Part shown: positions 1,847 to 35,035 of the stretch, piece by piece | Layout: each line of letters begins with the position of its first letter | How positions within the stretch are numbered: the first letter of the stretch is position 1 | IMG/VR virus record: IMGVR_UViG_3300036770_003657 | Span: 335,797 to 399,796 of that record | Reading direction: 5' to 3' (one strand) | DNA: 64,000 bases | Made by a program: the position numbers and the translations under genes | Notes under the pieces: model-generated | Database searches by the model: none | What the model was told of the DNA's origin: nothing | The model's input: the letters and a program-made list of their open reading frames with translations, nothing else

Positions 1847-1849
1847 CAT

Positions 1850-1930: not shown

Positions 1931-1942
1931 CAAGGAGCACAA

Positions 1943-2251
1943 ATGAAAATACTACTAGCGGCCCTACTCTTGATACCCGCAGTGGTATCTGCTCAACAGA
2001 TCAAGCCGGTCAATAAAGTTGTTAACTGTGGCGATGCAAAATTAATAATTGGTGAACTACGCAAGGTAAAAGAAGATCCTGTATGGGTTGGTGACGTAGA
2101 TGACAATACCAACAGTCGTATGAGTCTATGGATTAGTAAAGAAAATAATACTTGGACTTTACTACAGAATAATGACAAAATAGCCTGTGTTATAGACTAT
2201 GGTAATAAGAATGTGTTTAGTTCAGAGTTGTTTGGCGGCAAAGGGGTTTAG
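1943..2251 (+). CDS. Exported hypothetical protein
   Basis: Signal peptide MKILLAALLLIPAVVSA; AGGAG RBS; two Cys. Confidence 0.75.
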   Translation: MKILLAALLLIPAVVSAQQIKPVNKVVNCGDAKLIIGELRKVKEDPVWVGDVDDNTNSRMSLWISKENNTWTLLQNNDKIACVIDYGNKNVFSSELFGGKGV

Positions 2252-2338
2252 TATAGTCACTACTAATACCCATTATTAAAAATGGAAAAAACCATAGCAG
2301 TATAAAATTTTTAACTATTTCATCAAACATTGTAATCA

Positions 2339-3880: not shown

Positions 3881-3890
3881 AGTTAAGTAT

Positions 3891-4574: not shown

Positions 4575-5112
4575 TGTACAAATCCCTCATCATCTTAATG
4601 GCCCATTCAAAGGCCACACGAGCCTCATCACCTAACTCATCTGTGAGTTCGGCTCTGATTGCTACTTTAAGTTGATCAGGATTAGTAAACTCATAGAACT
4701 TGCCACTGCTAATGTGTGCTACTTGTTTCTTAATAATTAAGCCACCATTTAGGTCACCCATATGACGACAATACAAATGTGCCTTAAGTAAATGTCTACG
4801 TTCTAGGTCATTGGTTAGCTGGACCAAATAGTCATGATAGGCTAGGGTCTGTGGTAGCCAAACAAACTTGTGCTCTGGCCCAGCTAATTCCATAAAATCT
4901 TGATATATTGCTGGTAAACGCTCAATACCCTGTATGTTAGCAAAGTGTCCTAACATACGATTACCAAATTCAATTGGTCCGTATATGGGCAATAATTGGT
5001 ATAGATAATTTGCGTAATCTTCCTTACTAATTTTACCACTTAGTAATAGTTTAGCAAATTTAGTTGTTTCCGCCTCGTGATGTAAATCCTTAGTAATCTC
5101 TCTTAAACTCAT
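4564..5112 (-). CDS. hemO: Heme oxygenase
   Basis: TKDLHHEAE (proximal His) and HLYCRHMGDLNGG (distal helix). Confidence 0.92.
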   Translation of the reverse strand: MSLREITKDLHHEAETTKFAKLLLSGKISKEDYANYLYQLLPIYGPIEFGNRMLGHFANIQGIERLPAIYQDFMELAGPEHKFVWLPQTLAYHDYLVQLTNDLERRHLLKAHLYCRHMGDLNGGLIIKKQVAHISSGKFYEFTNPDQLKVAIRAELTDELGDEARVAFEWAIKMMRDLYNGE

Positions 5113-17821: not shown

Positions 17822-18706
17822 TTACCATGTAGTAGTATTTTTACCACTATCTCCTATTATTTGTCCAATACTATATGCAGCAGGAGCAGCTACAAATTCC
17901 ACTGGATTATTATGATGTTGTGTTACCCAATCTCTTATTCTAGTCCAGTCTTGAAATAAGCTTTGTGTAGTTGTATATGTTCTTTTAGTACCTTTATTAG
18001 TCGTTAATTCGTAGCTATATGTAATTGTGTAAGTTAAATCATTGGTCCAATAATATATTTCAGATTCAGGTCTTGTTGGACATTCAGTTATATCATACTC
18101 TGTTAAAATTCTAGGAGTAGTGTGTGGAGCAGAGTCAGAAGTAGTAGCACTTGATAAATGATCAACATATTTCATTGTTCCAGTCGGTATCATATCATAA
18201 AATCCACTGGCTTCACAATTATCTGCATTGATAGTCAATGTAATATGATCTAAAAATCTTGGGCGTCTTGGCATACTAATATCAGTACATTGTACTTCAA
18301 TAATTTCTTCATCTTCTTCATCATTATACCATAAGTAAGGTATAGGATCATAATCTGGATTTGGTACTTCTCCTGCATAATTGCCATCACCATCATATGC
18401 AGCTATAGTTTGGGGTAAAAAATGTGCTGGGTTAGGGATATGTGGTGGTTTTACTATTGATGCTCCAACTGTAAAACTAAAATTAGCATAAATTTCTACA
18501 CTGCCTCCAGAACCAGACCAATTAAAAGTATTTCTATAGTCATAGCTATAACTAACACTGTCTCCAGGTTTATCATTACTAGAAGGAGTAAATGTTTCTG
18601 GAGCACGCCACTCTGCTCCATTTTTAAATGGAAAAATAAATGGAAAATCTGTATTAGGTGGAGGAGGTGACTGTATCAGTGTATAGCCATCTATTATCAC
18701 ACTCAT
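17822..18706 (-). CDS. Hypothetical protein, probably baseplate/tail-associated
   Basis: 294 aa, coupled between the giant fibre and PAAR genes. Confidence 0.6.
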   Translation of the reverse strand: MSVIIDGYTLIQSPPPPNTDFPFIFPFKNGAEWRAPETFTPSSNDKPGDSVSYSYDYRNTFNWSGSGGSVEIYANFSFTVGASIVKPPHIPNPAHFLPQTIAAYDGDGNYAGEVPNPDYDPIPYLWYNDEEDEEIIEVQCTDISMPRRPRFLDHITLTINADNCEASGFYDMIPTGTMKYVDHLSSATTSDSAPHTTPRILTEYDITECPTRPESEIYYWTNDLTYTITYSYELTTNKGTKRTYTTTQSLFQDWTRIRDWVTQHHNNPVEFVAAPAAYSIGQIIGDSGKNTTTW

Positions 18707-21700
18707 TATAGTCTCCCTACAACTACTTCAATAACGCCTTCATCACCATCAAAATCTTCTAGTGCTTTACCTATTACCATACCCATACGTGGATCATCAT
18801 GTGCCTTGGCATAGCCATCTCCTGCACTGACCAACATATCACCTTTGCTTATCTTACCACGTACCTTAACTGGTACACGACCTTGTAGAGCAACTGCTAC
18901 AACGTGTTCACCTTCTAGTTCACTGTTCATTAAGTGTGCTGGGTTCTTACTAACTACACCTACTACTTTACGTGTTAAATCTGTACCTATGGTAACTTCA
19001 TTTACTCCACCAATCATTAGAACTGTGCCTTCTTCGTATTTTGCATCAGCAAGATAGTTCTCTGCCAAGTCAGCATATTTTGCTTGTGTAGCTACACCAT
19101 TGAATACAGAAGCATATAATGTATCAGTAGCAGGATTACAGTATATACCACCTGTTCCATAAACACTGTTACCGCTACCCCATAGCATTTGGTATGTAGA
19201 ATTACTATCGTTATTGTAATTGATAGTAACTTGCGAGGAAGTGGAAGCTGAAGCAGCATTACCTGTACAGCTTCCTGAACTTCCACTTACATTACCTGTT
19301 ACATTTCCTGTTAGATTACCAGAAAATGTGGCAGTTATAGTACCTGCACTGAAATTACCACTTGCATCACGTTTGACTAATGTACTTGCTGTATTTGCTG
19401 TAGCACTTGATACATTAAAGGTAGTTCCACTTAATGAAAGATCGGTTCCGGCACTGTAAGTAGTATTAGTATCTGGATTAGCTGGCATAGTCAATGTTAT
19501 TGAACTAGTTCCTGTGATGTGTCCGTTTGCATCATAAGTAACACTAGGTATTTTAAATGTACCACCAAATGCCAGTGTTCTTGTTGCTCCTCCATCACTT
19601 ATTGTACCAGCTGTTACTGAATTACTATGATTAAACGTAGTTCCACTTAGAGATAATCCAGTTCCAGCACTATAGGTAGTATTAGTATCTGGATTAGCTG
19701 GCATAGTCAATGTAATAGTATTGGTACCAGTAATATGTCCATATGCATCATAAGTAACACTAGGTATTTTAAATGTACCACCAAATGCCAGTGTTCTTGT
19801 TGCTCCACCATCACTTACTGTACCAGCTGTTATTGCACTATTGGCATGCCCTAAAGTTATTGTACCTGCTGTACTTTGATTAGCAGTAAACGTACCGGTA
19901 CCAGTTAATCCATTATTACCCTGTACAGTAAGTGTACCATTGCCTATACTGACTGTAGCTGTAGCTACACTAGCAGCAGTAACGTGACCATAACCATCAA
20001 ACTCAAAACTAATATCTTGTATAAATGTATTATCACTGTTATCACTGCTTAAATTACCTACACTGCTAGTGTCAGCATGACTTAGTGTAATAGTACCTGC
20101 TGTACTTTGATTAGCTGTAAATGTACCACTACCAGTTAATCCATTGTTACCCTGTACAGTAAGTGTACCGTTACCTATACTAACTGTGGCAGTAGCTACA
20201 CTAGCACTAGTAACGTGTCCAAATCCATCAAAATCAAAACTAATATCTTGTATAAATGTATTACCACTATTATCACTGCTTAAATTACCTACACTGCTAG
20301 TGTCAGCATGAGAAATATTAACAGTGACACCTTCACCACTTCCTGAAATAGTTAACCCACTAGTTCCAGTTTGACTACCTGGAGTTCCAGAACTTACTGC
20401 TGCTATATAATTACCAGTAGTATCAGTTCCTAGTGCTACACTATCAATTCCAATAGTTGTAGTCATGCTAACATTGTTAGATCCATCAAATGTCACACTA
20501 CCACTAACATCACCAGTTAAGGCAATAGTTCTGGCTGTAGCTAATTTTGTAGCAGTGTCAGCGTTCCCACTCAATCCACCACTTACACTACCTTGGAAAG
20601 TTCCTGCGATAACAGTTGACCCTGCTCCAAATGTCCATTTATCAACACTTTCATCCCATAATAAACTTACGTTGGTATCAGTACCTCTTTCTATTTCTAT
20701 ACCAGCATTTTGTGTTGGTTCAGCAGTTTCGTTACTATTCAGTACAATGATATTATCAGCTAACTCAATAGTTTCAGTATTGATTGTAGTAGTTGTGCCA
20801 CTTACTGTTAGATTACCACCAATAACAGTATTACCTGTAACGTTAAAGTTTCCACCAACATTAAGGTTTTCAGTTACCGCTACTCCACCAGTAACAATTA
20901 AAGTACCAGTTGACGTATTTGTACTGGATATATTACCTGCCATTTCAATACGGCCAGTCCCAAATACCTTAAACTTATCTGCACTGGCTAAATTAGTAGG
21001 TCCACCATAAGTAAAGGCTATGTAGCTGGTAGTATCAGTTACCGTAATAACCTTATCTATAGCCCAATGACTCTTTAGGTTATTATCCTTTACAAACGCA
21101 CTACCATTCCAATTTAAATTAGTTAACCAACTAAATCTATTGGTTGTTCCTACACTAGTAAATCTAGTTTTAAAATCTGTAGTATAAGCACTTTGTAAAG
21201 TAACACTAGTTAATGCCCCACTGCCATTGTAGGTAATATTAAAAGTTGGATCATCTATAGTAGGTGCTGCTTTATAAATCACCTGTCCACCAGTAGTAAA
21301 GTTAATAGTGCTACCATCAGTGGCTTGGAACGTCATGGTGTTACTTGCTGTTAATGTCTTAGCATTAGCCAATGTAAATGTACCTGTGCTGTTGGAAATA
21401 GTCATTCCATTTACAGTCTTATTGGTCAATGCTTCTGTACCTGCCAATGTAGCCAATGTACCTGTCGTTGGGAAGGTTACACTGGTTGCAGCAGTCATAG
21501 TAAATGTGCTGGCATATGCTCCTGATGTAGTTAAGTTACCTCCTAAGGTTATAGTCTTTGTACCATTGTTAACACCAGTGCCACCATATGTTGGGCTAAT
21601 TATGCTGGCTTGCCAAGTACCTGTACTAATAGTGCCTACTCCAGTTAGACTACTATTGACAACACCTGAACCTAATGTTGTACTACTCAATACATCTACA

Positions 21701-24700
21701 CCGTTGATCTTATAAGTTTTACCTGTGGCAAGATCCATGTTCTCACTACTGGTCCAGCTACTTGTAGATTGTATCCAACGGAAAAGTTTATCAGTGGTGC
21801 CTTTTATTGTTATACCACCTCCAGCTGCTGTAGCATCAGTAATTCCACCAGTGTTGAAAACTACAGCCACTCCATTTGGACTAATTTGATCTGGTGGTGT
21901 ATCAGCTGTAAACGTAAACAAATTAGCACCATTAATAGCAGTTACTCTTGGATTGGCACCTAATTGACCACCACTTACTCTACTCAATGTCATCCCAGGA
22001 ATCATTCCTGCTGTACTAGCAGTAATTGTAGTTGTCAGTGCTCCAATAGCGGTAAAGTTAATATTGCCACTACGACTTGATATTGGTTCTACTGAGCCTA
22101 ATTCAATATTGTTATCATCCATTTGGATGTCATATGCATTAAGAGTGCTGGCAGCACCGGTAATATTAACATTACCATTTACAGTGAGCCCGTTTAAGGT
22201 TATGCTGTCGGTCCAAACTGGACGTTTATTAGCACTGCCTAAACTCACTGGCTGAACATTTAACACAGAATTAGTATCACCTATAGGTAATTTTTGTATT
22301 ATGGTGGAGCCACTGGCATATAACATGTCCCCGACAGTATAACTGGCAATATTAGTACCACCCTTATCTACAGGAACTTGACCAATAATATTACTTGGTG
22401 TTAGATAATATAATCCATCTTGTCCATCTAGAGTACCTGCATCTACTACACCTGATTTAATACCAACAGCACCCTGACTACCTCCGGTACCTACTTCAAA
22501 TTGACTCTTATTAAATGACGCTACACCTAAGTTTGTATGGCCAGGGATATTTGCATTTTCCTGTCCTCCACTGACTACATCCACACCAACAGTAACTTCA
22601 TTGTAGAATTCTTGTATGCCTCCAGGTCCTGGATCAAAGAATGGGCCAGTTATAGTAATAGCACTATCAACACTTGGTTTTTTGATCTTTTGTACGGCCT
22701 TGGCCCATGTACTATCGCCTCTTAAAAAGGTGTTACTATTAGCAGTACCAATAGCTAATCTAGTAGTGCTCATTATACCACTAACAATATTAGTTGTATC
22801 TATATTACTGGCGCTTAGACTACTCCAGTTTTCTGCCAGTATACTAGCATTATCTACAACACCAATAATTTTAATGCTTTGCTTTCTAAAACTAGCAACC
22901 CCAGTACCAGTATTAGTAAAATTAAATGCACCAATAGTAAGACCTAATGTACTGGCCACTGCATCAGCTCTACCTTCATGTATAGTAAAGGTGTTAGTAG
23001 TCACACTTCCTACAAAGAATATGCTGTTAGTTAGTATACCGTATGGTGGATCTGCTGCAATAATTTTTACTGCATCACCAGTAGCAAATCCATGATCTGG
23101 AATATAAACTGTATCTTTGGTGATATCTAATATAGATAATGTTAAAGTTTGATTACCTGCACCAGAGTTAACAATTGTTAACTTGGTTGATAGACTATAA
23201 GTTGTATAAAGTTCAATAGTATCAGCATCAATACTTTTCACATAATAGATGCTATTATTAACAATCCCACCTAATGGTGTTCCAAATCCTGCATTATATT
23301 GTACAGCATCACCATCATCAAATGGGTGACCAACGATAGTTATACGACTTAGCGCAGTATTAACATTGCCTCCTGAACCTGTACTAGCAGCATTAAATGT
23401 AGCAACTACAGTACTGTCTAATTGATCAGTTGTTTTCGTTACAACATTTGCATCTTCTGTAAATTCTGGGGCTATACTATTTGCATTAAACTTCAATGCG
23501 CCAACAATATCAACATACACACGATTTTGTATTTGGCTAACCTTAACACTAAATGCGCTTCCACCTGTACGTCCATTCAAATTTGCATCATTTGCACTGA
23601 GTCTATCTACTGTGGTATACCCACTTCCACCGGCAGTTAGTACTACATTAGTAACGACTCCACCACTTAGGAACAGGTCTGCCCTAGCTCCAGTTCCTGA
23701 TCCTCCTGTTAAAGGCACATCAGTATAAAATCCTGAAGGTGGTTGAGTATATCCACTACCCCCTGCTAATCCTGTTACTGGATCATTGCTATTATCTAGT
23801 GCATTAGCAACACCTTCTACAATATATTCTATAGTGCCTTGTGCTTGACTATTACTACCTGTTACACTAGTTACTCCTGTAAAATCATAAGTTTGAGTTG
23901 GGTCTAATAGTAATATCTGTTTACTATCTAATTCACTTAAAATGTAATTGGTATTTTGATCTGGAATAATACCTCCTACTAGGGTAGGTGTTAATCCAGT
24001 GCTTGCACCATTAAGAGTTATTTCTCCTACAGTATCAAATGTATCGTCAAAAAATTCACCTAAACTTCCAATGACTACAGTAGTAGAATTATTGCCACCG
24101 ACTACTCGACCAGTTGCTCCAGAACTGGCTTGTAGGATTAAGTCACCATCAACGGCCACTAATACACCATCTAGAGTCAACGATACTCCACTATATGTTT
24201 CAATGGCTAAATCACCATTTAAAATACTAGTAGGAGGTACTGTATTGACCAAGTTTAGTCTACTACGATATCCATTACTTCTATATACTAAGAAGTTTCT
24301 TAATGGTGGTATCTGATCAGCACTTAATTTTCCTAGTGCATTTAACTGAGGGATACCACCTGGTTGAGTAGTAGTTGTAAGTTCTTTGTCAATAAAGTCT
24401 CCTAGTCTATTTTCTAAGAAACTTCTAACAGCCAACTGTGTGCTTAATCTATTATGACTTGGTCCGCCTACTTCATTATCACCGAGATCAATATCAGCAC
24501 TAAATTCTTCAATAGTAATATTACCAACAGCCAACTTCAACGCATCTAAAGCAGCAATACTAACAGTGTTTGTAAATTGTACATTACCTGTTTTGTTTTC
24601 AGCTTTAATAAAATCACCAACTTTAAAGTCACCAAGTTCATTGGTTCCTGAACTATATACACGCCCTGGTAATTCACTGACTTGTTCATATTCAACTCTA

Positions 24701-27700
24701 GTACGTCCACCGTTTTGTGGTAATGCATTATAGTCAGTTCCGCTACCTGCATATTCCCAAGTGTGGCTACTGCTGTTAACAATACTAGGTCTATGCAACC
24801 ATATCTGTTTACTTGGCAGTGTTTCTAAATTGATTAGTTCATTACCACTGGTAGTGGCCAATATCTTAAATGTTGCCGTGTATAAGTTATCTACGTTTTG
24901 GACATCAGTTACATCAATATTTAAAATAGCAGGGCTACCATTGTCATATTGAATAACAGTATCTAAGGTAAAGTTATTTCTAATAAAATTTTCCCCAACT
25001 AATACTTTTTCTACGCTAACAACTAGGCTTCGTGTTGTTGGATCCCAACTGAATATATATGCTCTATTTGGTGTTATACCACTGGTTGTACCTTCGATTA
25101 CTCTACCTGGAATAAATGTATAACTTTGTCCTATAGGAGGAGGTTCTACTTGTAATTTTTGATATACAACGTGACTTTCAGTGAGATCATCAATAAAAAA
25201 TTCTTTAATATTCTTTAATAAAAGATGTTCACCTGTTGGTAGTGGAGCAGTAAATTTTGCCTTTATTTCAAAACCATCGTCCAAATATAATTCAAATTGA
25301 TTGGCATTTAAAATTTTAATTACATAAGTTTGTTCGTCATAAAGACCTTTAATTAAACTATTTCCATTAGCTCTATAAACTATTTTCTCTGTATTTTGAA
25401 AACCGTGAGCAGGAATTGTTATGACATTAGTATTGACATTTATAACTGGTTCGATTTGTGCAGGACTAGTTCCTGGAATGGTGACATTATTACTTGGTGT
25501 AAAAGGTACCTGATCATCCACCTGTTTGTAACTATTAGTTACATCTCCAATATTACTATAGTCAACTATTTCTGGAACATTAATGATACTGTCAATAATA
25601 TCTATAATGATATCAAATAAATCACCAACTCTACTCTGTGCATCAGGATGTACTAGCGCAATAGTTAACGATTTTAGTTCTTGGAAGGCAGCAATATTTT
25701 GAGTTCTTTGATTTATTAGAGCTGCCACAGTGCTTGTAGAATAGGCTACACCAGCTTCAACGCTTTTACTATTGCCTCCTGTTAGTACATCATATGCTAC
25801 TGCCTCTAATACTAGTAAAGTATCTCTTCTACAAGTATCTTGATCATATGTAAATCCTGTATAATATGGCGCTGTGTTGGCAGTTACTTGGCTGTCAATC
25901 CAAGTTATTAGTGCATCTCTTAATTCTTCTTTGTTATTTAAAATTGTACTATATGTTTCTCTATATACAGGATTTCTAAATCTTATTACATAGTGCTGTA
26001 CTGGTAGGTCCCCAAAACCAATAGCAGTAATAGTTTGTTGTGCTCCTGCGCTGCCTGTAGCAACTACAATACCTTTATTAAAATCAAAAGCATTAGGACT
26101 ATAACCATTGGCCCTTAAAGCAAATTGACCAAAGTTAGTAGCACTATTGGTAATACTTAGATATCCACCGCTTTGACAATAACTACCATTTAAACAGAAG
26201 ATCTGGAAACAGCTAACAATCTGTGCATATGCATCATTAATAACACGATATCCTGTACCCCCAAAGCTCAACATAGTAAATGCATTACCTACCATTGATT
26301 TACCTTGTTGCGGAGCAGGTCCTTCTACTGGGTTCTCTGCTTCAATTTGATTAACAGGTATATTTGGTGTACGTACTTTACTACCATCAACCAATACACC
26401 ATTACCACCTAAGAAGCTGATTATACTACAGTTCTGCACATATGGGCTAATACTAATAACTGGTTTATTATTTGGTAGTCTAGTATATCCTACACGACTA
26501 CATTCTGGATCAGCTGGATCATCAAACGCCACTGCATAGTCAAATGTAAAGCTAGGTATATTGTTTACATCCAGTGCATCTCTGAAAGTTATCTCTGTAA
26601 AATAACAGCCATTACGTACACGTAGCATATCCTTACCAGCATTAAGTGGTCTAATATTACAGGCACGTAGACCAGCTCCTACTACACTAACGTTATCTGG
26701 AATAATAATTGGATTATCTTCGTAATAGTCTCCACTAGCAACTGCTATAACAATACGCTTTTCGTTTGGAATGTAGTCAGCAACAAAAGCTACAGTTTCG
26801 GTTTGAATGATTTCCTTGTCTGCTAGTAATGCTGCTCTAGCATCACTCTTAGTTGGACTTATTGGTGTAGCATTAGGATATTCTGTATTTGGTGCTTGAC
26901 TGGGTCCTTGATCTATAATTGTTACTACATATCCTAAAAGTTCCTGAGCTTTATCTATGGCAGCACTGCTGGCTGGATCTCCTACACCAAATGCGTTGAG
27001 ATCATTTTCTAATACTAAATTGATTATTTCTTCTTTCAAATATCTATATGTTATTGCACTGGCTTGTCTATCATTGAATATAGGTAATCCCATTCCATAA
27101 CTAAAATATTTTTTAGCAGCATCTATAGTTTGACTATTGCCACCATACATTAGGTCATAGGCTAAACTGTAGACTAGATATCTTATATCACGAGCGCACT
27201 TTTCTTCATTATAAGTAAAGTTATTAAACTCAACAGTAATAAATTGACTTACTCCAGTAATAATAGCAGCTTTGTTTTCCTGTATCAGTCCAAAATTAAG
27301 TTGCGTTGTTGGATTAGCCGAACTAATGTCTGGAAATACTTTATTGTTTAAAGAACTAGTATTTTCATCTGTAATAACATCAATGATTATATCAACTAAA
27401 TCTTGGCATTTGATAGTTTGTTCAGAATTAGTAGCAGGATATAATGAAGTATCTTGTGTAAGAAGATTGGTACTAGATTTAGTAATTGGTACTGCGTTAA
27501 CAATATCACCAATAATCTCTTGTAGTCTTGTATATGCTGCTAGTGTTTGTGCCTTCTCACCAGCACCTAATTGTAGCACGGCTCCAAATATATAAGCTTC
27601 TGCATTAGAATAGGTTGCACTATTACCGCCATATAATACATCGTATGTTATAGCATCAACTATAAATTCTACATCACGTCTACATTTATCTATTATACTT

Positions 27701-30700
27701 CCTGGGGTGCTGGCATATGATGGATAAGTATCAATTAACCAAGCAATGACTTCCTCTCTAATAAATGCTTTATTTGTTTGTAATTGATTTTTAGCATTTA
27801 AAACTGCAACTTCTGCATTACTGGGATCAGTGAAAGACACTGCATCAATAGCAGGATAACCTTCCTCAAGAAAATCAATTATTTCCTGTACTTTATTTTT
27901 ATAGCTTAAGAAGAATGTGCCACTGGTTACATATTGTTCACTTTCTCTGTATAATTGTTTTAATGCTGCTGCTGTCTGTATCTTTTGATTATAGAAAGTG
28001 CCTAATTGATTCTGTCTATCATAACTATATTGATTTTGTCTAGTATTTAAGTTAGTTCCCAGTACTATGTCATATATAGCTCCTTCAATGACTAGACTCA
28101 TATCTCTTTCACATTTGGTTACTGTGGGGCCAGTATAACTAAATCCTAAAAATGTATTATTGACATAGTTAGTACCTTGATCAACTATATATTCAATATT
28201 ATCTAATAATAAGTCTTTGGCATTGACATAACCTACTGGCAATCCTGCAGGAGTTGGCATAGTAATTGCAGGTAATATTGTAGGTATTTTAGCAATACCA
28301 TCTCCAGTACCAGGTACAGCGGCTACAAAGGTATCTCCTACTGTATAAGATTCACCAGTAGTACCAGCTACAGCGTTCCAATCAGTGCTTCCTAATACTT
28401 CAATTTCATACGTAATACCCGCAACTAAATCTGTTACAGGATATGATACATCAACTACGTTGATTAAGTCACCAGCATATGTATTCGCCAGTATGTTTGT
28501 AATACTTTGAATACTGGCAGCTACTTCAGTTGCCTCAGTTCCACTTTGAGTATCTACAGCCTTTAACAATAGATAGTTTAAAGCTCTAATGGTAATATCT
28601 TTTTGACTAATTAGTACTGCACTGGCTGTGGCATTGCTATAGGTAAATCCTGCCTTTACGCTTTGCCAATTACTGCCATAGATAAGATCATATCCAATAG
28701 CATCAATAATTAAACCAACATCTCTAAAACAAGTTTGATCATTAAATTCATTTCTTTGTTTATAGACTAAATTACTGGCTATTTGTAGGGCACGTTTAAT
28801 AGTTTTTACTGGTTTATTAATGCCATCAAAATTATCATCACCATTAGTTGCACTAACAGCTACTTGTCCACCACCAAATAAATCAGCACTAACAAATTCT
28901 AATTTATTTCCATCTCGATTAAGTGATAATATTGATCCATCTACACCTAAAACTCTTGGAAATGTTAATGTATAACTGTTTACAAACTCTTCCGGTGTTG
29001 TTCCTGCTGGGGCACGTAATCCTACATAGTTATTGCCGTTTGAAGTTAACTCTTTTAATCTAATCTCGCCTTGATTATTAACATTAAGACCGTCAGTGTT
29101 GATTAAGGTAGATCTTATTGTAGATGGAGTTGTCTCACCTATCCTAGTATTATCAATAGTTCCACTGTTGATATCTACGTTGGCTAATGTGCTAGTGCCA
29201 TCTACAGTAAGATCTTCAGCAATATACACATTGTTGTTTACTGTAATATTATTTACTGTAATATCATCTAATAACAAACTGCCTAAAGTTGCTTGGCCAG
29301 TAACATCGAGGTCACCACCAATATTAACATTACCAGTAGTATCAAGTGTATTGGCATCAATGTTATCAGCATTTATATCATTACTTGTTATTGTGCCTGT
29401 GAAATTACTAGTACCAGTAACATCTAGATTGCCACCTACATGTAAGTTTTCGCTTATTCCTACACCACCTGTTACTACGACGGTTCCAGTAGTTGTATCG
29501 GTAGAACCTATATTAGCCTTTGCATATACCTGTCCATCTAAATTAGTCTCTAAATTAACTGTTAAGTTTTCAATAGTAGCATTATCAAGTACATCTAATA
29601 TATCAGTTTCTATATTAGTGGCATCAACGTCACCAGTCAAATCACCTGTAACATCACCTGTAACATTACCAGTATACATAGCATCGGTACCTGTAGTACC
29701 TCTATCCAATATTACAGTTTCAGTGACTACACCACCAGTGTCCTTATAAAGAATAATATCTGTGTATGCTTTTGCATCAAACCCATTAGTACCATTTTCA
29801 AAAACTTTTACACTTACATTTTCAGCAAATATATCACCAGTGCTTGGTCCAATAATAGTACCTTCAAACTCACCAATAAATCTTTCAGTGGCTTCGATTA
29901 TTGTTCCTGTTATGGCTCTAGGTTCTTCTGCTCCAATTACAGTGGCATCAATATTCCCACCATTTATATCAACTTGATCTAACCTACTAAGCCCATAACT
30001 GGTTATATTACCACTTACCTTACCGATAAACTCAGCTTCTACATAACCTGAATCTAAGGGTGCTCCACCTGTACCATTCTCCAATACTTTTGTAATACCA
30101 TCTTCAGCATAGATATCACCAGCAAAATTTCCGCTTATGCTACCTTCAACATTACCATAGAATACAGGTGGTTGATAACTTAATACATTTGTTGGGCCAC
30201 CTGTTCCATTATCTAATATTTTAGTAGTGCCATCAGCAGCATATAAATCACCAACTACATTACCTTCTAGTTTACCAACAAATTTTACACTGGCAGTAAT
30301 TACAGTTCCTGTGATTAAGGTAGGACCGCTATTACCAATTATAGTGCTGTTAATAAATCCACCGTTTAATAACAAACTACTTATTTGACTGGTTCCAGTA
30401 GTTTGAGTTATTCGACCTAACAATTCACCTGTAAAAGTTGCATCTGTTCCATTGGTGCCATTCTCTAAAACTTTTACTCCACTATCGCTATAAATATCAC
30501 CAAAAACATCACCAAACAAGTTACCAGTAATATTGCCTTGAATGTTAGCTAGAATTTCTTCTTCTACATTTATACTATTGGCTACTATATCGCCAGCTAC
30601 ATTAAGATCGCCTCCAATACCTACTCCACCAGATACAATCAATGTTCCTGTATATGGGTCTAAACTAGGCGTATTATCAGAAAGTATTGTTTTAACATTA

Positions 30701-31035
30701 ACAGTAATTATTTCTGGATCAGCTACTAGGGTTTCTACAGTATTGTTTGTCATGACAATACTATTGATTCTATCTTCAGGGCCAATGCTTAGAAAAGTAT
30801 AGGGATTGAATTCGGAAACAACTTCACCTAAAGTAACAATATAGGATAAGTTGTTCCACCTAGTAAAACCATCACCTATTTTAAAGTTTTTTTGATCTAG
30901 GTCAACCCCAATCTCGCCCTGTGCAAGAATCGGGTTAATATCTATCCAGTTTTGTCTTGAATCTCTTCTTAATTGAATCCTTTTGGCCATTATTGTCTCC
31001 AACTGTAGTTTGGAGATAGCCTCCAAACCGCCCAT
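18706..31035 (-). CDS. Giant tail fibre / receptor-binding protein (4,109 aa; alternative start at 30990)
   Basis: Mtd_N-like RIQLRRD...W...NPILAQGEIG...KIGDG; G/T/N-rich beta repeats; pectin-lyase-like beta-helix; C-terminal ADLAENY...VALQGRVP fibre tail; TAAATA at 31041-31046. Confidence 0.9.
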   Translation of the reverse strand: MGGLEAISKLQLETIMAKRIQLRRDSRQNWIDINPILAQGEIGVDLDQKNFKIGDGFTRWNNLSYIVTLGEVVSEFNPYTFLSIGPEDRINSIVMTNNTVETLVADPEIITVNVKTILSDNTPSLDPYTGTLIVSGGVGIGGDLNVAGDIVANSINVEEEILANIQGNITGNLFGDVFGDIYSDSGVKVLENGTNGTDATFTGELLGRITQTTGTSQISSLLLNGGFINSTIIGNSGPTLITGTVITASVKFVGKLEGNVVGDLYAADGTTKILDNGTGGPTNVLSYQPPVFYGNVEGSISGNFAGDIYAEDGITKVLENGTGGAPLDSGYVEAEFIGKVSGNITSYGLSRLDQVDINGGNIDATVIGAEEPRAITGTIIEATERFIGEFEGTIIGPSTGDIFAENVSVKVFENGTNGFDAKAYTDIILYKDTGGVVTETVILDRGTTGTDAMYTGNVTGDVTGDLTGDVDATNIETDILDVLDNATIENLTVNLETNLDGQVYAKANIGSTDTTTGTVVVTGGVGISENLHVGGNLDVTGTSNFTGTITSNDINADNIDANTLDTTGNVNIGGDLDVTGQATLGSLLLDDITVNNITVNNNVYIAEDLTVDGTSTLANVDINSGTIDNTRIGETTPSTIRSTLINTDGLNVNNQGEIRLKELTSNGNNYVGLRAPAGTTPEEFVNSYTLTFPRVLGVDGSILSLNRDGNKLEFVSADLFGGGQVAVSATNGDDNFDGINKPVKTIKRALQIASNLVYKQRNEFNDQTCFRDVGLIIDAIGYDLIYGSNWQSVKAGFTYSNATASAVLISQKDITIRALNYLLLKAVDTQSGTEATEVAASIQSITNILANTYAGDLINVVDVSYPVTDLVAGITYEIEVLGSTDWNAVAGTTGESYTVGDTFVAAVPGTGDGIAKIPTILPAITMPTPAGLPVGYVNAKDLLLDNIEYIVDQGTNYVNNTFLGFSYTGPTVTKCERDMSLVIEGAIYDIVLGTNLNTRQNQYSYDRQNQLGTFYNQKIQTAAALKQLYRESEQYVTSGTFFLSYKNKVQEIIDFLEEGYPAIDAVSFTDPSNAEVAVLNAKNQLQTNKAFIREEVIAWLIDTYPSYASTPGSIIDKCRRDVEFIVDAITYDVLYGGNSATYSNAEAYIFGAVLQLGAGEKAQTLAAYTRLQEIIGDIVNAVPITKSSTNLLTQDTSLYPATNSEQTIKCQDLVDIIIDVITDENTSSLNNKVFPDISSANPTTQLNFGLIQENKAAIITGVSQFITVEFNNFTYNEEKCARDIRYLVYSLAYDLMYGGNSQTIDAAKKYFSYGMGLPIFNDRQASAITYRYLKEEIINLVLENDLNAFGVGDPASSAAIDKAQELLGYVVTIIDQGPSQAPNTEYPNATPISPTKSDARAALLADKEIIQTETVAFVADYIPNEKRIVIAVASGDYYEDNPIIIPDNVSVVGAGLRACNIRPLNAGKDMLRVRNGCYFTEITFRDALDVNNIPSFTFDYAVAFDDPADPECSRVGYTRLPNNKPVISISPYVQNCSIISFLGGNGVLVDGSKVRTPNIPVNQIEAENPVEGPAPQQGKSMVGNAFTMLSFGGTGYRVINDAYAQIVSCFQIFCLNGSYCQSGGYLSITNSATNFGQFALRANGYSPNAFDFNKGIVVATGSAGAQQTITAIGFGDLPVQHYVIRFRNPVYRETYSTILNNKEELRDALITWIDSQVTANTAPYYTGFTYDQDTCRRDTLLVLEAVAYDVLTGGNSKSVEAGVAYSTSTVAALINQRTQNIAAFQELKSLTIALVHPDAQSRVGDLFDIIIDIIDSIINVPEIVDYSNIGDVTNSYKQVDDQVPFTPSNNVTIPGTSPAQIEPVINVNTNVITIPAHGFQNTEKIVYRANGNSLIKGLYDEQTYVIKILNANQFELYLDDGFEIKAKFTAPLPTGEHLLLKNIKEFFIDDLTESHVVYQKLQVEPPPIGQSYTFIPGRVIEGTTSGITPNRAYIFSWDPTTRSLVVSVEKVLVGENFIRNNFTLDTVIQYDNGSPAILNIDVTDVQNVDNLYTATFKILATTSGNELINLETLPSKQIWLHRPSIVNSSSHTWEYAGSGTDYNALPQNGGRTRVEYEQVSELPGRVYSSGTNELGDFKVGDFIKAENKTGNVQFTNTVSIAALDALKLAVGNITIEEFSADIDLGDNEVGGPSHNRLSTQLAVRSFLENRLGDFIDKELTTTTQPGGIPQLNALGKLSADQIPPLRNFLVYRSNGYRSRLNLVNTVPPTSILNGDLAIETYSGVSLTLDGVLVAVDGDLILQASSGATGRVVGGNNSTTVVIGSLGEFFDDTFDTVGEITLNGASTGLTPTLVGGIIPDQNTNYILSELDSKQILLLDPTQTYDFTGVTSVTGSNSQAQGTIEYIVEGVANALDNSNDPVTGLAGGSGYTQPPSGFYTDVPLTGGSGTGARADLFLSGGVVTNVVLTAGGSGYTTVDRLSANDANLNGRTGGSAFSVKVSQIQNRVYVDIVGALKFNANSIAPEFTEDANVVTKTTDQLDSTVVATFNAASTGSGGNVNTALSRITIVGHPFDDGDAVQYNAGFGTPLGGIVNNSIYYVKSIDADTIELYTTYSLSTKLTIVNSGAGNQTLTLSILDITKDTVYIPDHGFATGDAVKIIAADPPYGILTNSIFFVGSVTTNTFTIHEGRADAVASTLGLTIGAFNFTNTGTGVASFRKQSIKIIGVVDNASILAENWSSLSASNIDTTNIVSGIMSTTRLAIGTANSNTFLRGDSTWAKAVQKIKKPSVDSAITITGPFFDPGPGGIQEFYNEVTVGVDVVSGGQENANIPGHTNLGVASFNKSQFEVGTGGSQGAVGIKSGVVDAGTLDGQDGLYYLTPSNIIGQVPVDKGGTNIASYTVGDMLYASGSTIIQKLPIGDTNSVLNVQPVSLGSANKRPVWTDSITLNGLTVNGNVNITGAASTLNAYDIQMDDNNIELGSVEPISSRSGNINFTAIGALTTTITASTAGMIPGMTLSRVSGGQLGANPRVTAINGANLFTFTADTPPDQISPNGVAVVFNTGGITDATAAGGGITIKGTTDKLFRWIQSTSSWTSSENMDLATGKTYKINGVDVLSSTTLGSGVVNSSLTGVGTISTGTWQASIISPTYGGTGVNNGTKTITLGGNLTTSGAYASTFTMTAATSVTFPTTGTLATLAGTEALTNKTVNGMTISNSTGTFTLANAKTLTASNTMTFQATDGSTINFTTGGQVIYKAAPTIDDPTFNITYNGSGALTSVTLQSAYTTDFKTRFTSVGTTNRFSWLTNLNWNGSAFVKDNNLKSHWAIDKVITVTDTTSYIAFTYGGPTNLASADKFKVFGTGRIEMAGNISSTNTSTGTLIVTGGVAVTENLNVGGNFNVTGNTVIGGNLTVSGTTTTINTETIELADNIIVLNSNETAEPTQNAGIEIERGTDTNVSLLWDESVDKWTFGAGSTVIAGTFQGSVSGGLSGNADTATKLATARTIALTGDVSGSVTFDGSNNVSMTTTIGIDSVALGTDTTGNYIAAVSSGTPGSQTGTSGLTISGSGEGVTVNISHADTSSVGNLSSDNSGNTFIQDISFDFDGFGHVTSASVATATVSIGNGTLTVQGNNGLTGSGTFTANQSTAGTITLSHADTSSVGNLSSDNSDNTFIQDISFEFDGYGHVTAASVATATVSIGNGTLTVQGNNGLTGTGTFTANQSTAGTITLGHANSAITAGTVSDGGATRTLAFGGTFKIPSVTYDAYGHITGTNTITLTMPANPDTNTTYSAGTGLSLSGTTFNHSNSVTAGTISDGGATRTLAFGGTFKIPSVTYDANGHITGTSSITLTMPANPDTNTTYSAGTDLSLSGTTFNVSSATANTASTLVKRDASGNFSAGTITATFSGNLTGNVTGNVSGSSGSCTGNAASASTSSQVTINYNNDSNSTYQMLWGSGNSVYGTGGIYCNPATDTLYASVFNGVATQAKYADLAENYLADAKYEEGTVLMIGGVNEVTIGTDLTRKVVGVVSKNPAHLMNSELEGEHVVAVALQGRVPVKVRGKISKGDMLVSAGDGYAKAHDDPRMGMVIGKALEDFDGDEGVIEVVVGRL
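19420..20313 (-). repeat. Two in-frame tandem duplications in the fibre gene (2x231 nt and 2x216 nt)
   Basis: cactgctagt at 20061 and 20292 (231 apart); atctggattagctggcatagtcaatgt at 19471 and 19687 (216 apart). Confidence 0.9.
25580..28780 (-). repeat. Five phycobiliprotein-like helical repeats within the fibre
   Basis: Cys codons of the C-x-R-D motifs at 28729, 28111, 27682, 27196 and 25831; each followed by I/L..A/S..YD...G[GST]N. Confidence 0.75.
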
Positions 31036-31607: not shown

Positions 31608-32705
31608 CTAGAATTGAGGAAGTTCATCATAGTTAATAGCATCACTCATGACACCAATAACATAGTTAGTTGATTCGTTTTCCTGTAATGCTGTTTGTTT
31701 CTTACTAGTATCGCTATGTTTGTTAAACCACGGAATAGGATTGGTCTTGATGTGTGTAGCATATTTTAATCCTATTTCCTTTAGTGCTGATACTGCTGTA
31801 TAATCAACAAAATCCTTTAGAATGTTAGCATTAAGTCCAATAACAGGTCCACGCTTAAACAAGTAGTCAGCCCAAGCCTTTTCTTCTCGTATAACATCCA
31901 TATATAAGGCATAGACTTCTGCTTCACATTCTACTTTGGCCTGTGCGAACCTTGGATCTTCCTTGACCACTTGATTGATCAACCAGCCTGTCCATCCCTT
32001 GTGTAATAATTCATCCTGTAGGATAAGACTGATAATGTTGCCATTTCCAATAAAGATCTTGTTCTCTACCATGGCTAGGCTAGTAGCAAAACTTACCATA
32101 AATCGTAGTGCCTCAAGAGCATAACTGGCATTAAGTGCTAGCCAAATTGCTTTGATATGATGGTCTACAGCGACTTCTGTACCTGTTTCTTTGAAGCAAT
32201 TTAATTGATGTAACTGCTCATAGTATCGACCTACACTAGCAGCCATATCCACAATCTCTTGTGTGTCATGTATGGTGTTAAACACATCTTTAGGTACATT
32301 ATAAATGTTACGAATGATATGACTGTAGCTACGACTATGTATATTAGTCTCGAAGAATGTCCAGTTGTACACTAATGCTTCTAGTTCAGGTAAACTTACT
32401 ACTGGAGTAAAGATTTGACTGGGCCCACGTCCTTGTAAACTATCCAATGCTGTTTGACGCAATAAGTTACTAGTGAAAATATGTTTTACTGCTTCACTGG
32501 CTTCTTTAAAATCCTGAGCATCTTTAACTAGGCTGATCTCCTCTGGTACCCAAAAGAAACCACGTGCTGTTTTTTCAAAGTCTGCTATTTTATTATATTT
32601 GACTTCTTCAAATCGTTGTATTGTCACTGGACCTGCTGGGTCAAGGAACATTTTACGATGTAGGTAGTCTGTCTTTGTGTGTAAGTTATATTGTTGTTTG
32701 CTCAT
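31608..32705 (-). CDS. nrdB: Ribonucleotide reductase class Ia beta subunit
   Basis: FFWVPEE, D/E/H iron ligands (ETNIHSRSY, EALRF, QDELLH), ENESTNY. Confidence 0.97.
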   Translation of the reverse strand: MSKQQYNLHTKTDYLHRKMFLDPAGPVTIQRFEEVKYNKIADFEKTARGFFWVPEEISLVKDAQDFKEASEAVKHIFTSNLLRQTALDSLQGRGPSQIFTPVVSLPELEALVYNWTFFETNIHSRSYSHIIRNIYNVPKDVFNTIHDTQEIVDMAASVGRYYEQLHQLNCFKETGTEVAVDHHIKAIWLALNASYALEALRFMVSFATSLAMVENKIFIGNGNIISLILQDELLHKGWTGWLINQVVKEDPRFAQAKVECEAEVYALYMDVIREEKAWADYLFKRGPVIGLNANILKDFVDYTAVSALKEIGLKYATHIKTNPIPWFNKHSDTSKKQTALQENESTNYVIGVMSDAINYDELPQF

Positions 32706-35035
32706 AATACGCAGGAATCGCAGTCCTCCTCCATTTCTATCTCTGTGTAATCCATTTTACTTTCTATACTAGCACCATTGGTATACTTAATATCTGCCTT
32801 GGCGCCTTGTTTATCTATTAGGCTGTAATAGAATGTTTTGATTCCCCAAATATGTGCCTGCATAAGGTTTTTCGCTATCAATGTACTAGGTACTTTACGA
32901 TCAGGAAAATGTTTGGGACTATAAAATGTGTTTGTACTAATGCTTTGATCCACATAGGCTGCTAGAACTGCTGCTGTTTTAATATAGCCAACGCAGTCTG
33001 TTTGTTCCCACATTAGTTGATACTTGTTTTTAAGTTTGTGGTATTCTGGAACTACCTGTGTAAAACTACCTGCCTTACTTTCCTTAGTACTAATAAGGCT
33101 CATGGGTAATTCTATACCATTAGTGCTGTTGATTACTACACTGCTAGATTCAACAGGAGCAATAGCCATTAAGGTAGCATTACGCACACCATACTGTATC
33201 ATATTTTGTCTAAGTGGTTCCCAGTCTAGTTCTGGAGTAAAGTCTGCTAGTTCATTAACACCCTTGGCTCTACGCTCCCACGGAAAGACTCCTTTGCCAT
33301 AGTGGGTTAGTCTACTATCCTTGCATGGACCACGTTCTTTGGCTAATTCAACTGTGGCTTCTGTTAGATAAAATGCTTGATGTTCCATCCAACTTTTAAC
33401 TTCTGCTAGAGCATCCTTATCACCATACTTTAGGCCACGTTTGGCATGCCAGTAGGCCAAATTAGTAACACCAATACCTAATGGCTGTATTTCATCATTG
33501 CTTAATTTGCTCTGTATGCTTAAGTAATCTTGGTAATCAAGAATGTTACAAAGGCTACGCTGGAGTATACGGCAAGCACGACGCATATCCTCAGGGTTGC
33601 GGAAGCAGCCCCAGTTAATTGACCCCAAGGTGCATAAAGCGATGCGGCCTTCTTGATCATCAAGTCTTTTGAATGTGCGTGTAGGAAGCAGGATTTCACA
33701 GCATAAGTTACTTTGGTATATGGGATGATGCAGGGGATCAAATGGTCCTTGGTTCAATACGTTATCTATGAACACAAGGTATATGCGTCCTGTATCAGTT
33801 CGTTCCTTAAGTATGCCTCCCTTAAATACTTCCTCGGCACTCATAGTCTTTTTGCGTAGACCTGGTGTCTTCTCGTATTTAACATACAATTCTTCAAATA
33901 GTTCAACATCTCTATAAAATGCTTCATAGAGATCTGGAACTTCATTGGGGTCAAAAAATGTTATGTCTTTTTGTTCTCTGAATCTTCGCCAGAAGAAACT
34001 CGAAAGCACAACCCCATAATCCATATGTCGTACCCTGGTTTCCTCTGTTCCTTGGTTGTTTTTGAGAACAATGAGATCATCAAACTGATGATGCCAAATA
34101 GGATAAAACACAGTGGCACTAGCATTGCGTATTCCACCTTGACTGCAACTCCTTAAATCGCCGAACCACTTTTTGAGGAAAGGTAGCATGCCTGTATGCA
34201 TGATCTCTCCACCCCTAATCGGACTACCTAATGGTCTGAGGCGTCCTATTTCCAAACCTATACCAGCACGTTTGCTGGCATATTTAGCCATCATTTCGCC
34301 GCTAGCAAATATACTGTCAAGATCATCGTCACTGCGGATAAGCACACAGCTAGAAAACTGTTTGGTAGGAGTACCAAGACCAGCAAGCACAGGAGTGGCA
34401 AGAGTAAAGAGCCCATCAGAGGCAGCATTGTAATATTCCCTTATGTAACGCATACGAGCAGTGTTAGGTTCTTCCTTATGAAATATAGTGGCAGCGGCTA
34501 CCATATAACGTACTTGTGGAGTTTCGTAGGTTTCTTTTGTACTACGATTCTTTACAAGATACTTTTCAATAAGTTGTTCAATAGCAGCATAGCTATATTG
34601 GAAGTCTTTGTCGTGATCAATCATATCATTCATACGATTCCAATCAGCTTCAGTATACCACTCTAGTAGTTCTTTAGTATACAGACCAGTAGCTATGTTG
34701 CGTTTAATGATTTCATAAAGATGAGGTATTTCGCTACTACCATATACATCTTTACGTAGCATATGGTATCGTTGACGACCTGCTACATATTGATAGTTAG
34801 TGTTACCAATGTCTGGATTTGACTCCACATCAATAAGATCAACAATAGCACGTAAGGTAATTTCATCTATCTCTCTAGTAGTAATACCATCATAGAAATG
34901 AGGGTTACTACGTATTTCAATCATACTTTGGCTTACATCAGCAATGCCATTACATATTCTTGATACTTGGGCTTGCCATTTTGTGAGATCTAAAGGCTCT
35001 CGGCTACCATTACGTTTTACTACAGTTATATTCAT
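32702..35035 (-). CDS. nrdA: Ribonucleotide reductase class Ia alpha subunit
   Basis: ATP-cone VVKRNG, QFSSCVL, QSNLCCEI, C-terminal CDSC. Confidence 0.97.
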   Translation of the reverse strand: MNITVVKRNGSREPLDLTKWQAQVSRICNGIADVSQSMIEIRSNPHFYDGITTREIDEITLRAIVDLIDVESNPDIGNTNYQYVAGRQRYHMLRKDVYGSSEIPHLYEIIKRNIATGLYTKELLEWYTEADWNRMNDMIDHDKDFQYSYAAIEQLIEKYLVKNRSTKETYETPQVRYMVAAATIFHKEEPNTARMRYIREYYNAASDGLFTLATPVLAGLGTPTKQFSSCVLIRSDDDLDSIFASGEMMAKYASKRAGIGLEIGRLRPLGSPIRGGEIMHTGMLPFLKKWFGDLRSCSQGGIRNASATVFYPIWHHQFDDLIVLKNNQGTEETRVRHMDYGVVLSSFFWRRFREQKDITFFDPNEVPDLYEAFYRDVELFEELYVKYEKTPGLRKKTMSAEEVFKGGILKERTDTGRIYLVFIDNVLNQGPFDPLHHPIYQSNLCCEILLPTRTFKRLDDQEGRIALCTLGSINWGCFRNPEDMRRACRILQRSLCNILDYQDYLSIQSKLSNDEIQPLGIGVTNLAYWHAKRGLKYGDKDALAEVKSWMEHQAFYLTEATVELAKERGPCKDSRLTHYGKGVFPWERRAKGVNELADFTPELDWEPLRQNMIQYGVRNATLMAIAPVESSSVVINSTNGIELPMSLISTKESKAGSFTQVVPEYHKLKNKYQLMWEQTDCVGYIKTAAVLAAYVDQSISTNTFYSPKHFPDRKVPSTLIAKNLMQAHIWGIKTFYYSLIDKQGAKADIKYTNGASIESKMDYTEIEMEEDCDSCVL

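Follow-up and report, generated by a model that had tools for sequence, protein, structure and literature searches.

A circularly permuted array of phycobiliprotein-like domains in a cap loop of a predicted beta-helix module of a cyanophage tail fibre protein

The locus described here is related to several known systems. Phycobiliproteins (Pfam PF00502; allophycocyanin, phycocyanin and phycoerythrin subunits) are light-harvesting proteins of the host that occur as free subunits and have a bilin site comprising Cys84, Arg86 and Asp87. The same fold is found in the bilin-binding domain of the core-membrane linker ApcE and in smURFP, which are cytoplasmic light-harvesting or engineered proteins; neither has tandem arrays, an insertion into a beta-helix or a permuted frame. 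Right-handed beta-helix modules are found in phage tailspikes and fibres and in DUF1565/pectate-lyase-like proteins. Finally, the giant fibre proteins of T4-like cyanophages (such as S-PM2 p091, Syn1_101, S-MbCM7_083 and DSL-LC03 WJZ47903) are made of the same building blocks as the protein described below: the beta-helix module plus units carrying a CxRD motif. S-PM2, Syn1 and ACG-2014h have an uninterrupted cap, with their units elsewhere in the protein. DSL-LC03 and S-SCSM2R carry CxRD units directly upstream of cap element 2, and in DSL-LC03 cap element 1 was also seen upstream of the units, but the DSL-LC03 insert is in the canonical frame (helix B comes first and there is no orphan helix).

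We analysed a 64,000-nucleotide stretch (hereafter, the window; positions 335,797 to 399,796) of the 399,796-bp virus record IMGVR_UViG_3300036770_003657. The window contains a giant fibre ORF (P0001) encoding 4109 aa. A search for related proteins recovered 276 homologues at E<=1e-5 among large cyanophage or metagenomic fibre proteins, and tblastn gave hits in 123 cyanophage records. In P0001, residues 760-1422 lie within the N-terminal cap loop of a predicted beta-helix module and contain four tandem units of approximately 150 aa; a fifth unit follows the beta-helix. The features of this region are listed in Table 1.

Table 1. Features of the P0001 fibre ORF, with positions in the window and in the protein
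Feature	Window position	Strand	Residues	Observations
Giant fibre ORF (P0001)	18706..31035	-	1-4109	Mtd_N-type N-terminus at residues 20-57
Cap element 1 of the beta-helix module	28777..28896	-	714-753	Ends in VKTIKRALQIA; cap1 profile found in 92 of 120 homologues
Cap motif 1	28777-28809	-	743-753	
Unit 1 core (helices E-H, no helix B)	28426..28752	-	762-870	CxRD at 769-772; unit profile positions 26-136; AF2 pLDDT about 85-92, dropping to about 72 near residues 794-813
Extra segment at the end of unit 1	28246..28449	-	863-930	Beta-like in sequence and longer than in the closest homologue; AF2 pLDDT <50; gap between units 1 and 2 is 69 aa here and 29 aa in homologue P0002; no Pfam hit
Unit 2 (complete)	27781..28218	-	940-1085	CxRD at 975; profile positions 1-143; AF2 helices at pLDDT about 85-94
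Unit 3 (complete)	27295..27792	-	1082-1247	CxRD at 1118; profile positions 1-144; sub-threshold PF00502 match to profile positions 29-99 (18.8 bits, E 3.2e-4)
Unit 4 (complete)	26845..27288	-	1250-1397	CxRD at 1280; profile positions 3-142
Orphan helix B (proposed to complete unit 1)	26770..26841	-	1399-1422	Helix motif at 1399-1418 (26782-26841); AF2 models a helix-kink-helix at pLDDT about 87-90, like the N-terminal element of units 2-5
Cap element 2 (PNEKR, IVIAVASGDYYEDNPI) and beta-helix body	25972..26769	-	1423-1688	Beta-helix profile positions 1-261, found in 117 of 120 homologues; AF2 gives short strands at first (residues 1428-1473), then pLDDT <50 for residues 1528-1654
Cap motif 2	26707-26754	-	1428-1443	
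Unit 5 (complete, canonical order)	25558..25947	-	1697-1826	CxRD at 1735; PF00502 E 1.5e-10; AF2 pLDDT 89; a unit at this place also occurs in most uninterrupted relatives

The original prediction held that two cap motifs that are normally adjacent are separated here by about 670 aa, and that a fifth unit lies after the beta-helix. These statements are confirmed, with one correction: 663 residues are inserted, replacing about 4 loop residues. Thirty metagenomic homologues have a loop of only 15-16 residues between the two motifs, as do S-PM2, ACG-2014h and Syn1, whereas 61 homologues carry arrays of 2-11 units there. The closest beta-helix relatives (63-70% identical) read ...SGLVYD-VNGI-PNEKR... 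where the window reads ...SNLVYK-[663 aa]-PNEKR..., and in a quick beta-helix tree the window clade sits next to uninterrupted proteins. In uninterrupted homologues, one continuous match to DUF1565 (profile positions 2-61) spans both motifs and covers the cap signature (G-D-D-x-N-D-G, a helix with K-T-I-x-x-A, a short loop, then a rung with G-x-Y-x-E). These matches are marginal: they score 15.8-20.7 bits against a cut-off of 20.3, one relative just reaching it, with PF12708 scoring 18.1 against 27 and 5mqp_A matching at E 0.059. The window protein itself gives no hit because the motif is split. The body of the module gave no Pfam or PDB sequence match, only its first ~60 residues match known beta-helix families, and only marginally, and it was poorly modelled despite a 46-sequence alignment, so that its beta-helix structure remains a prediction.

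The units have the predicted phycobiliprotein fold, reduced to helices B, E, F, G and H. Unit 5 is the only one that passes the Pfam Phycobilisome threshold, with 41.7 bits on the whole protein and 31.4 bits on the excised unit (cut-off 22.2). Units 1, 2 and 4 have no Pfam hit on their own; among 81 diverse units, 6 match PF00502 at E<=0.01 and no other family recurs. The top 50 Foldseek matches of the single-unit AF2 model are all phycobiliproteins or proteins engineered from them (probability 0.99-1.00; these include ApcE, 4xxi_A), and phycobiliproteins also dominate the list for the whole model. VIA-align gives Z 13-14.7 with an rmsd of 2.0-2.8 A over 110-117 residues, aligning model residues 1-119 to chain residues 42/43 to about 160; for smURFP (6fzn_A and 7uqa_A), Z is 13.4-13.8 over nearly the whole chain. 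The unit thus has no equivalent of the first ~40 phycobiliprotein residues (by conventional numbering, helices X, Y and A, which build the alpha-beta monomer), and Pfam matches likewise start at profile position 29 or 73. Unlike the free phycobiliprotein subunits, the units occur as covalent tandem arrays of 1-36 copies inside virion fibre proteins. The CxRD motif, present in all five units of the window, aligns with KC(84)xRD of phycocyanin alpha 6jpr_A (residues 84-87). Over about 1270 units, the Cys is conserved in 96%, the Arg in 91% and the Asp in 97%.

The original prediction also proposed that tandem units had been amplified and inserted as a circularly permuted module, such that the first domain may be completed by the last helix. 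The insertion and the permutation are supported by sequence comparison, whereas completion of the first domain by the last helix is inferred. A canonical unit begins with the L..NK..I helix (helix B), which precedes the CxRD helix E, as in units 2-5 and in every array of 42 homologues that we term class B. In a unit profile trained on 1299 units from 120 homologues, unit 1 of the window lacks the positions corresponding to helix B and starts only 8 residues after cap motif 1. The orphan segment at the far end aligns to profile positions 2-24 at 10.0 bits, while the best of 380 shuffled segments scored 5.5. This frame is shared by the window protein and 18 others (class A): unit 1 starts at profile positions 24-27 in all 19, and a 30-40-aa segment precedes the beta-helix in all 19, aligning to profile positions 1-24 in 18 of them. 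The helix-B-only profile detected the orphan in just 3 of the 19 at its threshold, so that in the others the assignment rests on local alignments of 4-10 bits; many units inside long arrays also lose a detectable helix B, indicating that the detector is imperfect. The same pattern, a core without helix B followed by 3-5 full units and an orphan helix B, occurs after the beta-helix body in 16 other proteins, including a 6682-aa protein of this same genome, and after the second beta-helix segment in a seventeenth (P0022). In contrast, none of the 41 arrays detected as starting with a full unit has the orphan. The units are only 17-32% identical to one another and their number varies between 2 and 4 in this frame, so any amplification took place in deep time and is not recent.

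That the orphan helix packs onto unit 1 has only weak modelling support. Both elements have high pLDDT in the AF2 model. An ESMFold2 complex of the unit 1 core with the orphan helix gave an ipSAE of 0.52 (three runs, 0.50-0.53), compared to 0.00 for the best of 3 controls; the runs agree in at least 82% of their contacts and the partner pLDDT is at least 67. In calibration, the mark was reached by 58 of 80 solved complexes and 2 of 110 mismatched pairs, but scores of 0.60 or under came from only 7 of those 80 solved complexes and from both mismatches that passed. As our own alignments were used, these counts hold only roughly.

We consider, with reasonable confidence, that the region is a self-closing domain-insertion cassette. 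A segment cut out of a tandem array at a shifted phase would be expected to yield a permuted first domain whose missing element lies at the far end, and inserted domains generally need neighbouring ends. It is inferred that the spare helix docks into the open groove of the first core, bringing the two ends of the insert back together at the loop so that the beta-helix can still fold. The array would then project sideways from the fibre as a closed arm (three arms, if the fibre is trimeric). In this model the permuted domain is split across a four-domain (or two-domain) array, so that closing it also closes the whole array; we found no described example of this kind in our literature searches, nor any paper describing this locus. 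The arm is most likely a display or spacing module on a host-recognition fibre, although this function is inferred. Because the Cys-x-Arg-Asp motif is almost invariant, the units may also carry a ligand.

A further possibility, compatible with this topology but tentative, is that the units are chromophore carriers in which the conserved Cys binds a bilin covalently, as Cys84 does in phycobiliproteins. The motif is retained in units that otherwise share only 15-20% identity with phycobiliproteins, and the unit spans the same elements as smURFP, a bilin-binding protein. Heme oxygenase and a ferredoxin-dependent bilin reductase are encoded in this window. In 22 phage genomes, CpeT is present only where units are present (both, 14; units only, 4; CpeT only, 0; neither, 4; Fisher one-sided p = 0.0096, or 0.026 without the podovirus), although this count has no phylogenetic control, and cpeT lies within about 2 kb of a unit-bearing fibre gene in S-PM2 and S-RSM4. 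Adsorption is reported as light-dependent for P-HM2 and S-PM2, which have units, while P-SSP7, which has none, shows no light effect; P-SSM2, also without units, still adsorbs in the dark, though less than in the light. Other observations do not favour this reading. The genome described here has 42 units but no CpeT or CpeS, P-SSM2 has a bilin reductase but no units, and T-type lyases are described as serving beta-Cys153 rather than Cys84 (PMC10452541). Further residues are equally conserved (an Asp at 100%, Asn 89%, Tyr 98% and Thr 88%); these do not appear to be phycobiliprotein signature residues and could fill the pocket or bind something else. We are not aware of any report of coloured virions.

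It is less likely that there is no functional closure, with the first unit being a truncated domain that is stable without helix B, the last helix being a linker or packing on the beta-helix cap, and the shifted frame being an accident of where recombination cut a tandem array. The weak complex prediction and the common occurrence of units with no detectable helix B inside long arrays are consistent with this, as is the finding that the orphan helix is not specially related to the first-unit helices of unpermuted arrays (its nearest relatives are ordinary helices from many arrays). However, the first core lacking helix B and the trailing orphan helix co-occur in two different insertion contexts, and the pairing is kept across proteins only about 40% identical and across 2- and 4-unit versions. 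Convergence of a helical bundle, or an assembly or annotation artefact, is very unlikely: although Foldseek E-values are weak (0.017 or higher), helical bundles can reach a Z of about 13 by chance and three units lack a Pfam hit, the sequence-only Pfam match of unit 5 is above the curated threshold, its register puts the phage Cys on Cys84, the top 50 structural matches of the unit are all to phycobiliproteins or their engineered derivatives, and the ORF has no stops, with the same architecture occurring in 18 independent metagenomic proteins and in isolate genomes such as DSL-LC03.

If the units do prove to be real bilin-binding domains, which at present seems possible rather than probable, cyanomyovirus fibres would carry covalently attached host-type pigments and act as light-responsive adsorption devices, giving a physical basis for the light-dependent adsorption of cyanomyoviruses. 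Phage-encoded CpeT-like lyases and bilin-synthesis genes would then serve the virion at least in part, rather than only the host antenna, and the closed, permuted four-unit arm would be one way of mounting such chromophore domains on a receptor-binding beta-helix.

The finding lies in one open reading frame on the minus strand (P0001, the giant fibre protein). The 399,796-bp IMG/VR virus record, of which the window is the last 64 kb, is rated as complete by CheckV. Neighbouring genes include an exonuclease, virion proteins and ribonucleotide reductase subunits: class Ia small and large subunit genes lie directly upstream of the fibre gene, with only a 96-aa ORF between them. This placement differs from the structural-gene neighbourhood of the fibre in S-PM2 and Syn1. 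Relatives are visible only at the protein level, as a megablast search of the region against 50,697 phage records found nothing. In contrast, tblastn finds relatives in 123 phage records, of which 112 are by name Synechococcus phages, Prochlorococcus phages or cyanophages and the other 11 are "Marine" or "uncultured" records; the matches fall in genes annotated as tail fibre or structural protein.

Every sequence element named in the original prediction is present where it had been placed. To examine the arrangement more broadly, 120 homologues were collected with a word search and used to train three profiles: a 146-position unit profile in the frame "L..NK..I helix first" (1299 units found), a 261-position profile of the beta-helix body and a 40-position profile of cap element 1. 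The resulting order of elements in the window protein is listed in the table below together with the other features discussed here. The 30-residue remainder between unit 4 and the beta-helix aligns to unit profile positions 2-24 at 10.0 bits, while the best of 380 shuffled segments scored 5.5.

Coordinates of the features discussed (residue n of the window protein maps to window position 31035-3(n-1))
Feature	Sequence	Position	Strand	Residues	Remarks
Giant fibre ORF (P0001)	window	18706-31035	-		4109 aa
Cap element 1	window			714-753	
Insert	window	26770-28758		760-1422	663 residues
Unit 1	window			762-870	profile positions 26-136
Beta-like segment at the end of unit 1	window	28246-28449	-	863-930	
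Unit 2	window			940-1085	full
Unit 3	window			1082-1247	full
Unit 4	window			1250-1397	full
Beta-helix body	window	25972-26754	-	1428-1688	
Unit 5	window			1697-1826	full
Motif SSSHTWEYAGSGTDYNALP	window	24718-24774	-	2088-2106	
Two pairs of near-identical repeats	window	19528-20310	-	3576-3836	about 75 aa each
Ribonucleotide reductase small and large subunit genes	window	31608-35035	-		class Ia
Ferredoxin-dependent bilin reductase	window	3891-4574	-		PF05996, 57.7 bits
Heme oxygenase	window	4564-5112	-		PF01126, 74.1 bits
Two further unit-bearing ORFs	same virus record, outside the window	about 103-123 kb and about 252 kb			6682 aa with 35 unit matches (P0019) and 2381 aa with 2
Region with cpeT and a unit-bearing giant fibre gene	S-PM2 record	163961-170379			
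Region with cpeT and a unit-bearing giant fibre gene	S-RSM4 record	162121-177038			

The four-unit block is an insertion. In thirty homologues, cap 1 and the beta-helix are separated by only 15-16 residues, and S-PM2 p091, Syn1_101 and S-MbCM7_083 show the same. The closest such relatives read SGLVYD-VNGI-PNEKR, while the window protein reads SNLVYK, then 663 residues, then PNEKR. In uninterrupted relatives, one continuous match to Pfam DUF1565 positions 2-61 covers both cap elements; one protein just reaches the cut-off (20.7 against 20.3 bits) and the others score E 0.004-0.009. The original prediction that the two cap motifs are normally adjacent holds. The claim that the body itself is a beta-helix rests on weaker ground: neither a Pfam search of the body nor a phmmer search of an uninterrupted beta-helix against PDB sequences gave a match, and AF2 left residues 1528-1654 at pLDDT <50 despite 46 aligned sequences with many invariant columns. 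The module may need trimerisation to fold, or it may be an unusual fold.

With respect to sequence, unit 5 matches Pfam Phycobilisome (PF00502) at E 1.5e-10 (profile positions 73-153), unit 3 matches positions 29-99 below threshold, and units 1, 2 and 4 match no family. Of 81 diverse units, 6 match PF00502 on their own and no other family recurs. An AF2 model of unit 5, built on an 81-unit alignment, has a pLDDT of 89 and five helices. The top 50 Foldseek matches in the PDB for this model are all phycobiliproteins or proteins engineered from them (probability 0.99-1.00), although the E-values are weak (0.04 or higher). VIA-align gives Z 13-14.7 and an rmsd of 2.0-2.8 A over 110-117 residues, with model residues 1-119 aligning to chain residues 42/43 to about 160. 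An ESM-Atlas shape search with the unit was uninformative, with all TM values about 0.5 or less. By the usual phycobiliprotein helix numbering, the unit would equal helices B, E, F, G and H, with the L..NK..I helix as helix B, the CxRD helix as helix E, and helices X, Y and A absent. A profile search of PDB sequences aligns the phage motif with K-C84-x-R86-D87 of phycocyanin alpha (6jpr_A, E 0.031). Across about 1270 units, the Cys, Arg and Asp of CxRD are conserved in 96%, 91% and 97%, respectively, as are a further Asp (100%), an Asn (89%), a Tyr (98%) and a Thr (88%). The units are homologues of phycobiliproteins but are not members in the full sense, because the N-terminal dimerisation helices are missing.

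The family norm is helix B first: this holds in unit 5, in units 2-4, and in all arrays of 42 proteins that we call class B. In class B, the same cap loop holds 5-11 units, the first unit starts at profile position 1-3 (18-24 residues after cap 1) and, in 40 of the 42, the last unit ends 1-12 residues before the beta-helix; DSL-LC03 is an isolate example. The window protein belongs to class A, which comprises 19 proteins (12 with four units and 7 with two). In all 19, the first unit starts at profile positions 24-27, only 6-9 residues after cap 1, and a 30-40-residue segment precedes the beta-helix; in 18 of the 19, that segment aligns to profile positions 1-24. The same design recurs in a second context: in 16 further proteins, one of which is the 6682-aa P0019 of this same genome, the beta-helix body is followed by a core that lacks helix B, three to five full units, an orphan helix B and a short beta-like segment, after which the chain continues. 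P0019 has an uninterrupted cap, and its permuted cassette after the beta-helix body has four units. A seventeenth protein, the metagenomic homologue P0022, shows the same design after the second segment of a split beta-helix. None of the 41 arrays detected as beginning with a full unit has an orphan helix.

This pairing is the strongest argument that the orphan helix and the first core belong together, as had been suggested in the original prediction that domain 1 may be completed by the last helix. Direct modelling adds less. In a 1121-residue AF2 model, the unit 1 core and the orphan helix-kink-helix are both confident (pLDDT about 85-92 and 87-90, respectively). In place of measured contacts between the two, a fragment-complementation test by complex prediction was made with the unit 1 core and the orphan helix, each with a 19-row alignment. 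It scored ipSAE 0.52 (runs 0.50-0.53) against a best control of 0.00, with the runs agreeing in at least 82% of contacts and a partner pLDDT of at least 67. A score of this size is rated as only weak support: in calibration, the mark was reached by 58 of 80 solved complexes and 2 of 110 mismatched pairs, but scores at or under 0.60 came from only 7 of those 80 solved complexes and from both mismatches that passed. As our own alignments were used, these counts hold only roughly. We also tested whether the permuted frame arose by moving the first helix of an unpermuted (class B) array. The nearest helices to the orphan come from ordinary units of many arrays and not from first units of class B, so there is no evidence for that route.

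Units within the window protein are 17-32% identical to each other, and each is closer to the unit at the same position in other class A proteins (unit 1, 39-51%; unit 3, up to 57%). The two-unit form corresponds to unit 1 plus a unit-4-like unit. DNA-level repeats are limited to a 54-nt stretch at 61-72% identity. The amplification inferred in the original prediction is therefore ancient, and a recent amplification is rejected. In contrast, two pairs of near-identical repeats in the C-terminal third of the fibre, one pair starting HADTSSVGNLSSDNS at residues 3576 and 3653 and the other containing TRTLAFGGTFKIPSVTYDA at 3746 and 3818, look much more recent than the phycobiliprotein-like units. 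The beta-like segment at the end of unit 1 is about 40 aa longer than in the 72%-identical homologue P0002, is modelled at pLDDT <50 and has no Pfam hit.

In a quick beta-helix tree, which we use only for the coarse statement that permuted and uninterrupted forms are intermixed, class B is separate, while class A and uninterrupted proteins are mixed and class A needs at least 3 changes. The window clade sits in one well-supported clade with three groups of uninterrupted proteins. The insert has thus been gained, lost or exchanged repeatedly. Unit arrays also enter this module at several loops: in three metagenomic homologues (P0022, P0034 and P0074), arrays of 10-14 units flanked by small beta segments are inserted inside the beta-helix body, between profile positions about 141 and 147, which is a second insertion site in the same module. 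The motif SSSHTWEYAGSGTDYNALP has a counterpart in homologues such as P0003 and P0019, where it sits at the very C-terminus after 31-36 units; unit 5 and what follows it may therefore themselves be an insertion between the beta-helix body and a closing segment.

A phycobiliprotein-derived domain array sits in a surface loop of a conserved fibre module in a rotated frame. We infer that the terminal helix B clasps the first core, bringing the ends of the insert together so that the array hangs off the beta-helix as a closed arm. A display or spacing role for this arm on a host-recognition fibre is the conservative reading of its function, which is only inferred.

The near-invariance of the bilin-contacting triad invites a second idea, that the units bind bilin, which we consider possible but unlikely. 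In its favour, a heme oxygenase and a bilin reductase lie side by side about 14 kb from the fibre gene. In 22 phage genomes, CpeT occurs only where units occur: 14 have both, 4 have units only, 0 have CpeT only and 4 have neither (Fisher one-sided p = 0.0096, or 0.026 without the podovirus), although this count has no phylogenetic control. In both S-PM2 and S-RSM4, cpeT lies within about 2 kb of a giant fibre gene that carries CxRD units. Light-dependent adsorption is reported for P-HM2 and S-PM2, which have units, while P-SSP7, which has none, shows no light effect; P-SSM2, also without units, still adsorbs in the dark, though less than in the light (PMC6628666). Against this idea, the present genome has 42 unit matches (including 5 in the window ORF) but no CpeT or CpeS lyase, P-SSM2 has a bilin reductase without units, and T-type lyases are described for beta-Cys153 and not Cys84 (PMC10452541). 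The other highly conserved polar residues could also fill the pocket.

Full-text literature searches found no paper describing phycobiliprotein-like domains in phage fibres, and the papers that came closest say nothing of it, although databases already carry the automatic PF00502 label on some of these proteins. The fold, domain insertion and circular permutation are each known; what looks new to us is their combination, a host antenna domain as a fibre building block mounted as a permuted array that is inferred to be self-closing. With respect to protein architecture, the insert appears to be a clean natural case of a tandem-domain array made insertable by a circular permutation, in which the split first domain is inferred to act as a clasp, and uninterrupted, unpermuted and permuted versions are all available for comparison. 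With respect to phage biology, the finding makes it testable why adsorption of some cyanomyoviruses needs light and what phage cpeT and bilin-synthesis genes are for, especially in phages of hosts without phycobilisomes. A domain derived from the host's light-harvesting proteins, which retains the pigment-holding residues, is a major building block of cyanophage fibres, with 1299 copies in 120 proteins and 42 in this genome alone.
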